From assembly GCA_002269645.1 (NCBI GenBank), contig NIVC01000212.1, positions 124,001 through 188,000 of the forward strand: 64,000 nucleotides of DNA. Reading direction: 5' to 3'. Source of the DNA: Macrostomum lignano (lineage: Eukaryota). Under the pieces are notes generated by a model that made no database searches, was not told the origin of the DNA, and saw only the letters and a list, made by a program, of their open reading frames with translations. How positions within the stretch are numbered: position 1 is the stretch's first letter; each line of letters opens with the position of its first letter. The translations under genes were made by a program, and so were the position numbers. This document shows positions 26,601-32,600 of this stretch, piece after piece.

Positions 26601-29600
26601 CAGTAGCGTGGAAATTGTTGGTCATTAGTCGTCGTACGCTTGCGTCTGGCGTTCAGCATTTTCTATGGGCGTAACTTGCAGACGCTTGTTCTAATCAACG
26701 CTGCTTCGAAAAGTGGTGGTCCGGGTGCTGGAAAATCGGATATTGAGGCGTCACTTGTAGATTCATGCCTGTCAGTAAGCAGTGTTGGGCACTAACTAGT
26801 TAAATAGTTTACTAGTTATTAACGAAGTTAGTGTTTCACTAACTTTTAGCAGTTTTCCGTTACTTAATTTCTTTTCAACGGACCTAATGCCCCCCCTTAA
26901 AAAATTGCTGGCTGCGCCACTGTTCTCTCCTCTCTCTCTCTCTCTCTCTCTCTCTCTCTTTCTCTCTCTCCCTCTCTATCTCTCTCTCTCTCTCGCTCTC
27001 TCCCACTGTCTCTCTCTGTCTTGGTCTCTCCCGAAATTGGGCCATTGGCACAAAAAGTAACAGAGGAGAGGATGCGGAGAGGAAAAATGAACTAAGTACT
27101 TTGTATTACTACAGTAATATGCGGAAAGTTAACGTGGAAATAGTTTATGTGGAAATGCATTTGTGGAAGTACACCGCATGTGCTGTAGTACGCACTAGGC
27201 GAGACGCCAAAACTTCGGTTTTTAGTAAAGTGCAGTAAATGCATCGTAGCACGATATTTATATGCAGTTCATCGAGGGCACTGTAAATAGGGGGAAGGAG
27301 ATCGGTACATCCATTACACTACTGTCTTAAATGCTGCGTCGAAATGCGACAGATGTATAGCTGTGCAAGATAAGACGTGCGTGGGAGACATGGAAACAAG
27401 AAAGGATGACCGGTATGTCAAAAGTAATATATATGGAGAAAAACTGGCACTGTTGCTGTGCGCACGTGGCAGGACGCCAAAACCGCACTGTCATACTGTA
27501 CAGTAAATGCATAAATGCAAGGTAGTACGATATTTATATGCAGTTCATCGAGGGCACTGTAAATAGGGGGAAGGAGATCGGTACATCCATTACACTACTG
27601 TCTTATGCTCACGTCATCACTGTCACCGCCCCATATTGGCTAGCTCCGGCAAATCAATGCGCAGATGAATGTCACGATTTTTGTTCACGACGGCAGCGGC
27701 GTGGTGCCACATTTCAATGTTACTCGTGGGCAGTTCCGTCCAACGGATGTAAACTTCCAACAGGCTCGGGCATTCCCTGGCCAGCAGCGTCAGACAGTCC
27801 GGCGTAACGGCGGTGCCATCGAGCCACAGCCAGTTAAGGCTGGTCGCGACGGAACAGGTGCACAGACGCGATAGACTGCCATCGTCGAGGCTGGGGCAGT
27901 TTGCGAGCGTCAGTTCGAGCATTGCAGCAGAGGCGTGGTCGGCTGGACGAATACCTGCAGGAGGGAGAGTCTCCCAGGCTTTGCCCGTCACCAGCCGACA
28001 GTCCAACAAGTGCAGGCACTGCAGCTGTGGCAGCGTGAGTAACAGACAGGCCACGAGACTGTCGTCGCAGGCGGGCCACGAGATAGTCACGTGAGTCAGG
28101 CCTGCGTACGGATGGAGAAGTGTACATAGTAGCGTCCAGTGTGCAGTGTGTAGGTCTAGAGCGGAGGCGTGCGCACCATACAGGATGAACATGCATGCCT
28201 CATAAAGACTAAGACTAACGTCACGTGCATGCACATTTGTGCGTCAAATGTAATATGCACCACACTCACCACGACATCCGCCGAGAGCGGTCGCGAATGC
28301 AGGCTCACCGACCCTGATCCCGCAAGCTTCGTCGGTGGGCGTGACGTAAAGCTGCAGCACTCGTAGCGACGGAGGTAGCCGAGTGCCACGGAAAACGTCG
28401 GCAGACCCGGCTGGCGCGTCCGGACTGGCAGCTATCTGGTATCTCAGCCGCGTCAAGTCGGGCAGCTCCTGGCAGGCCAACCGGAAGCCCTCCGCGCCCA
28501 GACTGAGGCAGTGGACGAGGCTTAGGCTTTGGAGCCCAGGCCAGCACTTCAGCAGTTGCCGCAGGCCCCACACGGTCAGCTTGTCGCCTGCGTCCAGATG
28601 CAGGTGACGCAGGTTGGCGCCCTTGAGGCCGACTCGTGCAGCAATTTGACCGGCGATGGCATCCGTGACGACCTGGCTGTGCACGGTCAAGCGCTGTAGC
28701 TGGTCTCCCTGCCCGCTGATGATGTCGAGCAGCACTGAGAGATAAGGAAGGGTGCATTTCGTCGTTTAAACGCATTCATTATTTAGAAAGAAATTAATGG
28801 TTGCACACAATTCCCGGAGAAGGCCTATACGTAATTACTAAGCCCACTACGAAGTGACTATTTTTAAATGGATTGTAACAACATGCCTCGTGTAGCCCTG
28901 GCCGGAGACGGGGATGCCGGCGGGTCTAGGGTGACCTCACGCAGCCGGGTGAAGCGGCACCAGCCTGTAGCGATGGCCGCTGCTACGGGACCAGCTGAAG
29001 TGGCAAGCATGTCTGCGCGGACATGCAACACCTGTAGGAATGCCGGAGAAGGGGGGGGTGAAGTTAATAATATTAATACATAGACAGCCATCTCGACTAA
29101 AAGGACTGTGCCATGTGACATGAGAACGTATGTGACATGGGTCATATGACCTTACTGTTTGAGCAATTATACATGCCGTATTACCTGTATGCGGCCCAGC
29201 AGTCGGCAAAAGGGTGCAGCGCACTGTGCGACGTCGCCACCAAAGATTTCCTCGCCGTCTGTCAACAGCTCCAGCTTCTCCAGTCTGGGACAACCGTCGC
29301 TCAGACTGGCCAGCGCCTCCGGGTTGAAGATGCCTGGGCATTCTGCCAATGATAGCTCCCGCAGTTGTAGGCAACTGCGACCAGCCACCGTGAGGAGGTT
29401 TGGGCCGCCGGTGTACTGGCCCATGTCCAGCAGGCGGAGCGTACGCAGCTCGCCGCAGCGCAGAAGGAGCGTGGCAGCGCGGTCGATGGCGATCGCGCTA
29501 GGCGGCTCGAACACGGTGCCCAAATCTAACTCTTTCGCCGCCGTCGCCAAGGTCATGAGCCGTGCCGCTGTGCTGTAGTCGTCCAGTGCAGTGGCGGTGA

Positions 29601-32600
29601 CAGGCAGTCTCTCCCACAACACTGGTGCGCGGACGACGTCTGCCCAACGGCGGCATACTTGTGCGCACACCAGCCGAGTGGGTACCGTGAGGTGCTGCAA
29701 CACCTGCATGAGCAACTCCGACGGCAGCACGTCAATGGTAGGTGGGGCACGGCCGGTCGATGACTGCATCGCTCGGCAGTTCGGCGGAGCTGTAATCCAC
29801 ATGCGAGGGACGGGGTTCAAATAAACTTGATTACTGTATTAATGCAGTACTGCAGTAATGGATTAATGCAGTACCGTAAGTTGTACGGTAGGTTCATGTG
29901 CAGTTCAGCTTTTGTTGTTGTTGCTTTTAGGGAGAAGTCGTACGAGAAAATGGAGCAATTCCTGTACTAATTTGTAGTAGTAGTAGTTGTTGTTGTTTCT
30001 GCACAATATGTTTTACACTATATTCGAAGACATGCAAAACATGGACAGCTGCCGTATACCGTGCAAGAGAAACAAGGAATAGGAAGTTCCGTGAAGTCGT
30101 TTCAATTCTTAAAATAACGAGACGTGCAGCAGGTGAAGTAGAGTGAACAGCGGTTGGGAGCGGTGTATTTAACAGACAGTACAAGAATAGTATAAGTAAC
30201 CCAAACAAAAGTTTACAGACAGTAATATTACGTAATAGTATAGGCTAGTATGGCTAAATATATGCACAGAATAGAAGCAGTGCCGATCAGGGACAGCAGC
30301 AGCGGAGGTGTACACACTGATCTACACACTTGTCCTCGTCGGAGTAAATGTGAGAATACGGGATGGACAGAAGTCGGGCTGCGGACAGTCGGAGACACTA
30401 GACATGGATTGCAGTTGTCTGACACACTTGTTCGGCAAATCTTCGGCACTTGCCGCCCGCCCACTAGGCGGCGAAGGAGGTTTGCACGTGCGGGAGGAAA
30501 GCTATGTGGGTGTCAGTTACACAGCATGTGCCAAGCACGTCCACCACGGGGAGACAGAAGTGCATGCCGCCGATGTCGCCGAATGGGTTGTCGACGACGC
30601 GCTGAATGTGCCTCAGTCGGCAGCCGTCGTTCTGTGCGACGCCCGAGATGTAGTATTCCGGGTCCAGAAGGCAGACGGTACGAAGGCGACGCACCATCAG
30701 GATTGCAGTCCCGCGGGTGGGGGACCTGCGGATGGCGTCGACGCGACCGAAAGCCAGTTGGACACCGTCGTCACTGGCGGCGAAGGCGACGAAGCAGCAC
30801 AGGGACCGCTGGTGCTGTAGCGCGGGCAAGTAGCGCTCAATGCGCCATCCGTTGGTCAACAGAGCCCAGCGGAACTCGTCGTCATGTAGCTTGGTGTACA
30901 CCCTGGTCCCGTCGGCCATGGTCTCTTGGACACCCTGAAGGAATCCACGGGCCGCAAAGGGCGAGGCCAGGCCCAACTGGTGCATGACGGCACGCCTGCT
31001 GAATTGCCGTCTGATGGCAGAGTGCACCTGAGTGAAATGAAGGGTGGGAGGCGCCCGTTGCAAGTTAGGTAACGGTCTGATGCAGCAACGCAAGCCCTCG
31101 GAGGGGAACATGGTATCAAGGGGGAACCTTTGTAATTATATATACCACGATAACCCAGGGGGTGGGTTTCTAGTGCGATACAAGAGTGGGCATCCTGCAT
31201 ACGTACTGACTACTAGTGAGTAGAATATAGAGGCGTAGATGCCATTATACTATATTTTTCTAATTAGAGAAAAGGGTCTCTCTGCGTACCTGATCACCGA
31301 CGAACCTGGCGCCCTTGACGCGCGTTTTGAGGCCGTAGTGCAGAGACTCGAACAGGCCGGCGGAGGTGCGCCACACGGGTCCGAAGAGAAAGGCTGCGGG
31401 AACGAGGTGCTCACAGACCTGGTGGGCATTGTAGGTCATGGCGGCCGGCGAAAACCCATCCTTCAGGCTGGCGTAGAATACTCGCAGGGTCTTCGCTGCA
31501 CGAGTAACTTCCGTCAGCGGGCAGTTCTCCAGAGACAGCCAGAAGATGGAAGAGGACAGGAGCAGCAGTTGATTGTAATAGAACGGTCCCAGCGTGTCGC
31601 CGAGAACCATGGGGCCGTACACCAACAGCCAGCACTCAAATTCGTGCCCGCGGAAGTGGCCGAGGTCCGCCAGGGTGCGAGGGCCCCGCTGGTGCGACGC
31701 AGGCACTCGAATACTGGCCGCCTTGGCGTCCACTTCAGCCACATGGCGGGACAAGTCCGGGTTCTCGGCCATCTTGTCAGGTCGCTTGCCGACGGGCAGA
31801 AAGTGCTGCCGCAGCAGCCAACCGACAACGCCGACGAGGCACTGATGGAGGTAGCAGGGCGGGCAGGAGGTGATGAAGTCGAAGCCCTGCAGCCGATGAA
31901 GAGGAGACAGCCTGACGACGCCGAGGTTGTGGCCTGCGCCCGCCGGAATCGTGGTCGCCAGGAGGATGGTGTCCTGCAATGCCCGGTACCGCGGCCGTGT
32001 GCAACCGGCGTCGGATGCTGCTTGCAGCGCGTCGGCCGAAAGCTCGCATGGGAAAATGCGCGCATTTCCTCCGCGGTCGGCATCATGGAGAGTCACGGTG
32101 TAACAGTGATCGCAGCCGTACACTGCTGAGCAGTGCTGTAACCCAGTCACCTCAACCCTCTGAGGCGCGTCAAGCACGAAGAGGAGCGGATGGAAGCGGA
32201 TGCAGCCGCCACGCGTGCCGTCTCGTCCACCACCTGTGCGGAACATAACACCCTCGATGCGAAGGCTGTTCAGCTGGGCCACCAGCCACGGCAGGAAGGC
32301 GTCCACGCTCACCTTGTTCCTGCAGGCCCACAGAGCGCAGACCACCGTGAAGCGCGCTCGCATGTGGTCGGGGACCTCATTCACGGTAAGGTACACGGGG
32401 CAGATGTTGTACACCGCCCGGCTGAACACGGAAAATGCATCGATGTTGACCGTGACCGTCAGATCTGAGCGAGCGGCCTTGTCAATGAGGTGCGTAAAGG
32501 CCGAGTATGCCGTGCTTTGCCACAAGCTCAGACCACCCGGCCGCCGCGTGACGTCCGCGGGGAAGGAGACGACCGACAACAGGCCGCAGCGCTCAATGAG

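Follow-up and report, generated by a model that had tools for sequence, protein, structure and literature searches.

To our knowledge, only a few transposons carry genes that work against host control: VANC in Arabidopsis, TET/JBP in fungi, and captured fragments of piRNA-pathway genes in Drosophila. Viruses and bacterial pathogens have repeatedly hijacked the SCF (SKP1–CUL1–F-box) ubiquitin ligase with F-box proteins of their own. Among the viral proteins, polerovirus P0 and the poxvirus ankyrin/F-box proteins are F-box adaptors built without a leucine-rich repeat (LRR) solenoid. The subject of this article is an intact four-exon F-box/LRR gene on the minus strand of contig NIVC01000212.1 from the flatworm Macrostomum lignano, at 27623-29769 of the window (the whole 64,000-nt stretch of DNA analyzed, to which all coordinates refer unless another contig is named). 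The gene lies inside a young DNA transposon, and its product is a candidate substrate receptor of the host SCF ligase that may serve the element.

The closest described cases resemble the flatworm locus in part. VANC of the Arabidopsis VANDAL21 element figures as a transposon counter-silencing factor in papers cited in PMC13534243, and fungal DNA transposons carry the host-derived counter-silencing genes TET/JBP (PMC12730594). As in those systems, the flatworm element has an extra gene beside the transposase of a DNA transposon, possibly acting on host control. The biochemistry, however, is of another kind and there is no homology, and an anti-silencing role for the flatworm gene is proposed by analogy. 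A Drosophila telomeric retrotransposon has captured F-box gene fragments, homologous to CG12520 (PMC13534243), and is likewise an animal transposon with F-box gene sequence. That case involves fragments in a retrotransposon; the flatworm gene is whole and spliced, codes for protein, and resides in a DNA transposon. The viral F-box proteins (P0, poxvirus, giant virus) offer the parallel of a selfish element that encodes an adaptor for the host SCF, but they belong to viruses and have no sequence relationship to the flatworm protein; F-box/LRR proteins, of which giant viruses have many, match its fold with probability 1.0. A literature search found no account of a full-length F-box/LRR gene in a transposon, nor of the present element, with Repbase outside its scope. 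The GenBank identifiers of the F-box gene (BOX15_Mlig022939g3) and of the transposase-like gene (BOX15_Mlig033474g1) were not found in searchable literature text.

A Recently Active DNA Transposon

The transposon copy in the window spans 12,710 bp (22777-35486), with all three of its genes on the minus strand. Similarity to four other loci begins and ends exactly at these borders, and the flanks of those loci are unrelated. The copy is bracketed by a 3-bp target-site duplication, GAT, at 22774-22776 on the left and 35487-35489 on the right. Its left terminal inverted repeat, the 14-nt CCCGATTGAAAATC (22777-22790, plus strand), recurs as the reverse complement at the right end (35473-35486, minus strand), with imperfect similarity extending for about 70 nt, and the termini of the element read 5'-CCCGATTG...CAATCGGG-3'. 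Just inside these termini lie two arrays of the 8-mer TCGGCACT, which has 73 matches in the window against 1.7 expected. The left array contains 24 copies, all on the plus strand (22801-23302), and the right array contains 45, mostly on the minus strand and within a 53-nt tandem repeat (34839-35470).

The 3-bp duplications are perfect at three complete copies: GAT in the window, TAA at the locus labeled L004, and CTG at L003. At a further locus, L011, the flanking triplets do not match (CAG vs TCA). The window copy sits in a 20-21-nt minisatellite, and joining its flanks minus one GAT yields a perfect repeat unit. The element is a class II cut-and-paste transposon, and the view of an earlier, sequence-only reading of this DNA that the F-box gene is transposon-borne is borne out by the inverted termini, the target duplications and the existence of copies with different flanks. 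Two other explanations of the structure were considered and rejected. Segmental duplication instead of transposition is ruled out by the borders, by the target duplications and by the empty site that can be restored. A Helitron, suggested by the palindromic left terminus (CCCGATT-GAAA-ATCGGG), is ruled out by the inverted termini together with the 3-bp duplications.

An identical 390-aa F-box product is encoded on six assembly contigs, and a seventh copy was found by way of its transposase; in all, seven or more copies occupy a minimum of five different sites. Their flanks are unrelated except at L003 and L005, which share one flank. Outside the repeat arrays the copies are about 99.6-99.9% identical. 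About 46 substitutions separate them over roughly 12.7 kb of alignment, most of these within the arrays, and full copies elsewhere measure 13.9-14.5 kb. The transposon family is very young and probably retains competent members. The published M. lignano repeat annotation left it unmasked, and its genes were deposited as ordinary host genes.

Individual insertions add some detail. The L004 copy (NIVC01001499.1) lies within a Cys-loop neurotransmitter-receptor gene, on the opposite strand and presumably in an intron. L003 and L005 represent the same insertion site, with the same CTG at the right terminus, and L005 ends before the left terminus. The 3.4-kb flank that they have in common matches at only about 97%, against near identity of the elements in those gene regions that were compared. 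Tandem repeats may hold much of the difference in the flank; another possible reading is gene conversion between copies.

Structure and Transcription of the F-box/LRR Gene

On the minus strand the gene runs from an ATG at 29769-29767 to a stop codon at 27625-27623. Exon 1 (29185-29769) encodes the F-box, at aa 12-55, and an alternative in-frame ATG lies upstream at 29802. Exon 2 (28887-29031) and exon 3 (28270-28734) follow, and exon 4, which includes the stop codon, occupies 27623-28101 or begins from 28155. Intron 1 is 153 nt long (GT-AG, phase 0), intron 2 is 152 nt long with a GC-AG boundary (phase 1), and intron 3 is 114 or 168 nt long (GT-AG, phase 1). The two possible acceptors of intron 3 are both in frame, and the protein is 557 aa long with the distal acceptor (28101) or 575 aa long with the proximal one (28155). 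On alignment and predicted structure the 557-aa form is preferred, because the 18 extra residues of the longer form are missing from all five aligned host paralogs and fall in the sole internal low-confidence stretch of the structure model. The 557-aa form aligns with the same five paralogs without a gap.

The GenBank model BOX15_Mlig022939g3 (P0001) is partial, at 390 aa, and 100% identical to the gene model given here. It has the same junctions 1 and 2, including the GC donor, begins upstream at the in-frame ATG at 29802, and lacks the 3' end. Homology and one conserved intron position back intron 3 and exon 4, which are predicted. The gene models of M. lignano were built from RNA-seq assembled with guidance from the genome, after transcripts that overlapped annotated repeats had been discarded (PMC5730564), and RNA-seq-guided GenBank models exist for all three genes of the transposon. 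Since an RNA-seq-guided, repeat-filtered model exists for it (PMC5730564), the F-box locus is transcribed and the transposon was not in the annotators' repeat library.

Much of what the sequence-only reading had said of the gene stands. It had placed an intact protein with three introns at 27623-29769, and a minus-strand gene with four exons, an uninterrupted frame and intron phases 0, 1 and 1 is found there. Its length of ~544 aa was an underestimate, and a lack of expression, which it had named as an outcome that would count against its proposal, is not what the RNA-seq-guided model indicates.

An FBXL-Type Protein

The N terminus of the protein matches the Pfam F-box-like model PF12937 at aa 12-55 with an E value of 1.2e-12 and the F-box model PF00646 with an E value of 2.9e-9, far beyond chance. 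It aligns with the F-boxes of Skp2 and FBXL2, for which structures have been solved, and retains the LP, ELL, VC-RW and LW positions; the canonical N-terminal F-box of the sequence-only reading is thereby upheld. No Pfam LRR model scored above threshold on the protein. An AlphaFold2 model, built on an alignment that includes distant relatives, has a predicted local distance difference test score (pLDDT) of 81 and a predicted template modeling score (pTM) of 0.80. It consists of F-box helices followed by 18 strand-helix units, and the predicted solenoid comprises about 17-18 LRRs, for which the earlier count of about 10 was too low.

The best fold matches in the PDB, as found with Foldseek, are SKP1/ASK1-bound FBXL2, TIR1, MAX2/D3, FBXL17 and COI1, with probability 1.0 for FBXL2, TIR1, MAX2 and FBXL17. 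By sequence and model, the protein combines the two features of the FBXL class, an F-box and a C-terminal LRR domain. The FBXL proteins (Skp2, FBXL2 and FBXL17, with TIR1, COI1 and MAX2/D3 of plants) are its best matches in both sequence and fold, and the likeness consists of the N-terminal F-box and the LRR solenoid. The identity over structural alignments, however, is about 12-18%, and there is no orthology to any named FBXL. The flatworm transposon protein has more repeats than Skp2 or FBXL2, and its gene sits inside a mobile element, unlike FBXL genes.

Origin of the Gene in a Host Family

The nearest relatives of the transposon gene belong to the host. A word-indexed protein search returned only the F-box gene itself and no relative of 50-90% identity. 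A HMMER search of 1.84 billion representatives gave 92 matches, the best non-self match having an E value of 7e-13 and 33% identity, and neither protein search found anything between 33% and 100% identity. The gene is accordingly not a recent copy of any annotated host gene, as the sequence-only reading had allowed it might be. The top non-self matches are all M. lignano proteins, in at least eight clusters, with named FBXL proteins from other animals not far behind these paralogs in score. Identity in a trimmed alignment amounts to 26-31% between the transposon protein and its M. lignano paralogs, and to 22-24% between it and outgroups. The phylogeny against host genes that the sequence-only reading had called for places it, in a rough neighbor-joining tree, as sister to a M. 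lignano clade with 19-52% identity among its members. Named members of this host family are Mlig022867, Mlig029821, Mlig026428, Mlig001195 and Mlig001907.

The family resemblance extends to particular features. The C-terminal LRR block characteristic of the host family is present in the transposon protein, and introns 2 and 3 are offset by about 0-4 alignment columns from introns of two paralogs, P0002 and P0099, the P0099 equivalent of intron 2 being mapped only approximately by tblastn. The homologous intron positions and the nearest relatedness indicate that the transposon gene and the host family had a genomic, intron-containing ancestor in common. The closest relatives nonetheless differ from the transposon gene in their 26-31% identity, in their ordinary genomic surroundings and in lacking intron 1. 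This extra intron, and with it an extra exon, is unique to the transposon copy, and the introns of the transposon gene are short compared with those of the paralogs. The host paralogs have ordinary genes as neighbors or form tandem arrays, and within 10 kb of them there is no transposase homologue. At one host locus (L009; NIVC01001389.1, 10001-20600), three F-box/LRR paralogs stand in tandem, which indicates that the host family grows by local duplication; a second, partial copy of this locus is found in L007. The GC content at third codon positions does not discriminate between transposon and host genes, the host genes ranging from 0.55 to 0.81.

The simplest reading of these comparisons is an old capture, at the DNA level and with introns included, of a member of the host family, which would now be the most divergent member. 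No annotated host parent gene was found. The frame, the splice sites and a solenoid that is predicted to fold have survived divergence to about 30% identity, and intactness of this kind implies purifying selection over most of the history of the gene.

The Transposase-Like Gene, the Third Gene and the Superfamily

Upstream of the F-box gene on the minus strand is a transposase-like gene (30464-34375), which matches the 946-aa product of BOX15_Mlig033474g1 (P0101) in blocks at roughly 34375/34114-33300, 33130-31287 and 31030-30464. The protein is at least 946 aa long, and a 516-aa central open reading frame (ORF) in the window corresponds to part of BOX15_Mlig033474g1, which was annotated from another copy. 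Its core motifs are VNIDAF, LDAP, GCDHC and HFRGHE; read by eye from the sequences, GCDHC comes 18 residues after LDAP and HFRGHE lies farther on. Two aspartate motifs are conserved, and no catalytic E was identified. The sole other homologue found by profile search is a protein of the tick Ixodes persulcatus, with 25% identity (BLASTP), whose 90%-identity cluster has 17 member sequences. Both the flatworm and the tick proteins have a zinc-ribbon-like CxxC...CxxC and the VN-D, LDAP and GC-xx-C motifs. The tick locus (L010) is a 31-kb gene model and is uninformative on cargo. No Pfam match to the transposase, including Transposase_21, was found at E values up to 10 (up to E 1 for P0101), and there was no PDB sequence match. 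AlphaFold2 run on a three-sequence alignment gave a pLDDT of 28, which is unusable.

The third gene (24363-26659, minus strand) encodes a 605-aa protein with a coiled-coil region and a tail of Gly/Ser/Thr-rich repeats, in which no known domain was found. A BEN domain had been suspected by eye, and no BEN match appeared at E values up to 10. Each of the two genes that flank the F-box gene contains a coding minisatellite. At 24321-24913, the Gly/Ser/Thr-rich tail of the 605-aa protein is specified by an 18-nt repeat, and in L003 this protein reaches 653 aa. At 33242-33961, an acidic stretch rich in Ser, located N-terminally in the transposase-like protein, derives from a 60-nt repeat. The number of repeats in each minisatellite differs from one copy of the element to another.

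The CMC superfamily (CACTA/Mirage/Chapaev) has target duplications of 2-5 bp and, in most families, termini of the form 5'-CA...TG-3' (PMC12730594). The flatworm element is like CACTA/En-Spm and Chapaev in its 3-bp duplication, its short inverted termini and its long inverted subterminal arrays of a short motif. Like them, it has more than one gene with introns. By eye, a C(2)C-like arrangement (GCDHC) follows the putative second aspartate of its transposase, with an H(3)H-like one (HFRGH) farther on. A further point of resemblance is the habit of carrying host-derived genes, which is textbook knowledge for plant CACTA elements and is described in PMC12730594. The termini of the element, however, are CCC...GGG, not CA...TG, and no database match ties its transposase to CMC. 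By its sequence features the element is best described as CMC-like and autonomous-looking, a candidate member of the superfamily.

State of Individual Copies

The copy in the window departs from the others at several places. Relative to L003, L004 and L005 it has a 1.3-kb internal deletion at 30244-30250, and the missing sequence is noncoding spacer upstream of the F-box gene. A tandem repeat of about 280 bp lies between the F-box and coiled-coil genes (27140-27600), where other copies are longer by about 0.77 kb; at 27133-27143 the window copy has about 0.77 kb fewer tandem repeats than L003 and L004. At 32819-32823 (minus strand) it has a run of four Cs where four other copies have five, which is either a transposase frameshift at 32822 or an assembly error. 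The C4 run at 32822 is common to the window copy and L004.

The F-box gene itself is nearly invariant. Its coding sequence (1,728 nt) has no substitutions among six copies, and a 2.3-kb F-box region in the same number of copies shows one intron single-nucleotide polymorphism and three 1-bp deletions in C runs, all three of them in L011 and two of them exonic. In the transposase, L002 has a few extra 1-bp indels, including one 1-bp insertion, and L005 has one 1-bp deletion at 31162, within the transposase intron (31286-31031). The 1-bp deletions all fall in short runs of the same base and may be errors in the long-read assembly of a repeat. In L003 and L005, the F-box gene and the compared transposase region (33200-30400) are both uninterrupted. 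L011 (NIVC01002297.1, 9053-22906) has the only uninterrupted annotated transposase (946 aa), and its transposase carries a 3-bp in-frame deletion. The oddities of L011 could reflect assembly error, recombination between copies or real decay.

What the F-box Protein May Do for the Element

The reading put forward here, as the likeliest of those considered though still short of probable, is that the product is an SCF substrate receptor that serves the element by docking on host SKP1-CUL1 and marking a host protein that restrains transposition. With its N-terminal F-box the protein would attach to host SKP1-CUL1-RBX1, and its solenoid, predicted to have about 17-18 LRRs, would bind a protein that then becomes ubiquitinated. 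The element would gain by the removal or modification of a host restraint on transposition, for example a silencing, chromatin, repair or cell-cycle factor. It would act in cells rich in SKP1, whether proliferating or of the germline. Spermatogenesis depends on Mlig-SKP1, whose enrichment is in proliferating cells (PMC9740662), which indicates that the SCF partner is present where the transposon must act. We infer that SKP1 is bound, that there is a substrate and that the element benefits. A PIWI pathway that silences transposons reportedly exists in M. lignano, as Zhou et al. are said to have found in 2015. Even so, PIWI/AGO as the specific target, which the sequence-only reading had proposed on analogy, would be an unlikely one. 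The broader suggestion that an active animal transposon uses its own SCF receptor as a counter-defense, either destroying a PIWI/Argonaute-pathway or chromatin-silencing protein or out-competing the host F-box/LRR family, is given an equally slim chance.

Several observations count against a function for the protein in the element. Captured host sequence without a role is frequent in DNA transposons, CACTA-type elements among them. The case for function is plausible and draws on sequence, predicted fold and analogy. The GenBank model is 3'-partial, which leaves exon 4 without direct RNA support here, and the window copy may be inactive, judging from the 1.3 kb missing upstream of the F-box gene and the transposase frameshift. 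Selection on the gene during its time in the element is not measurable as a ratio of nonsynonymous to synonymous rates, because the coding sequence does not vary by substitution among the copies. No relative of the element, whether older or from another species, was found, and the gene may have entered the transposon recently, from a host gene since lost or never annotated.

A rival explanation is that the gene is passenger cargo, a captured host F-box/LRR gene that is transcribed and useless to the element, kept intact through selection before its capture and the youth of the copies. This is a serious possibility, if a tentative one. Gene capture by DNA transposons is common in textbook accounts, the flatworm gene belongs to a host family with intron positions in common, the roughly 99.6-99.9% identity of the copies outside the arrays means that decay would not yet be visible, and F-box gene fragments have been captured by the Drosophila element (PMC13534243). 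Against it, the host parent is absent, with nothing between 33% and 100% identity in either protein search. The six copies of the identical protein that were examined all lie inside the element. The gene is whole and has introns of its own, while captures more often amount to fragments. The intron and exon that it has in addition to those of the paralogs suggest independent evolution.

The protein could also be turned inward, with the 605-aa partner or, as the sequence-only reading had offered as an alternative, the element's own transposase as the target, limiting or timing transposition. The three genes are co-oriented in one element and self-limitation of transposons is a known principle, but no degron or binding motif was identified, and such self-regulation is improbable. 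Equally doubtful is a decoy that competes with the expanded F-box/LRR paralogs of the host for SKP1 or a common ligand and blunts a ubiquitin-based defense without destroying a target. The sister position to a lineage-specific, tandemly duplicated host family and the presence of that family's characteristic C-terminal LRR block would suit a decoy; the idea is purely inferential. That the locus is an ordinary host gene, seen several times as haplotypes or segmental duplications in the polyploid DV1 assembly, would account for the flank common to L003 and L005. It is nevertheless highly improbable, given borders that are identical in all copies beside unrelated flanks, perfect 3-bp duplications at three sites, inverted termini with inverted subterminal repeats, a minisatellite unit that is restored on removal of the element, and one copy within a Cys-loop receptor gene, presumably in an intron.

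Surroundings of the Element

Other mobile elements and a host gene lie elsewhere in the window. At 7644-12516 a tandem repeat of 159-161 nt forms two arrays in inverted orientation, whose arms, of up to 793 nt, are 100% complementary. Between them lies an ORF of 474 aa (9499-10923, minus strand) with no Pfam match and with PIF/Harbinger-like DDE motifs as read by eye. The region is probably another DNA transposon with ends built from repeats. About 3 kb beyond the left end of the F-box-bearing transposon are host exons of intraflagellar-transport type (13560-19492, minus strand), with WD40 propellers and tetratricopeptide repeats like those of IFT140/IFT122/IFT172. On the other side, a 10-kb AT-rich stretch (36000-46000), with 33-39% GC against 52-63% in the transposon, separates the right flank of the transposon from a long interspersed nuclear element (46799-50538, plus strand) with endonuclease, reverse transcriptase and RNase H, split over two overlapping ORFs. 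Farther along is a Ty3/gypsy pol region (52862-55713, minus strand) with protease, reverse transcriptase, RNase H and integrase, also split over two overlapping ORFs.

Implications for Transposon Biology

M. lignano is amenable to RNA interference, in situ hybridization and transgenesis, which makes the proposed role of the F-box protein directly testable. Even if the F-box gene is mere cargo, the locus documents an unclassified and recently active family of DNA transposons. A complete F-box/LRR gene kept in a young, apparently autonomous animal transposon would join two themes, transposons that counter host control and the hijacking of the SCF ligase. If the counter-defense reading were true, the flatworm gene would do for a transposon what F-box suppressors such as polerovirus P0 do for viruses.

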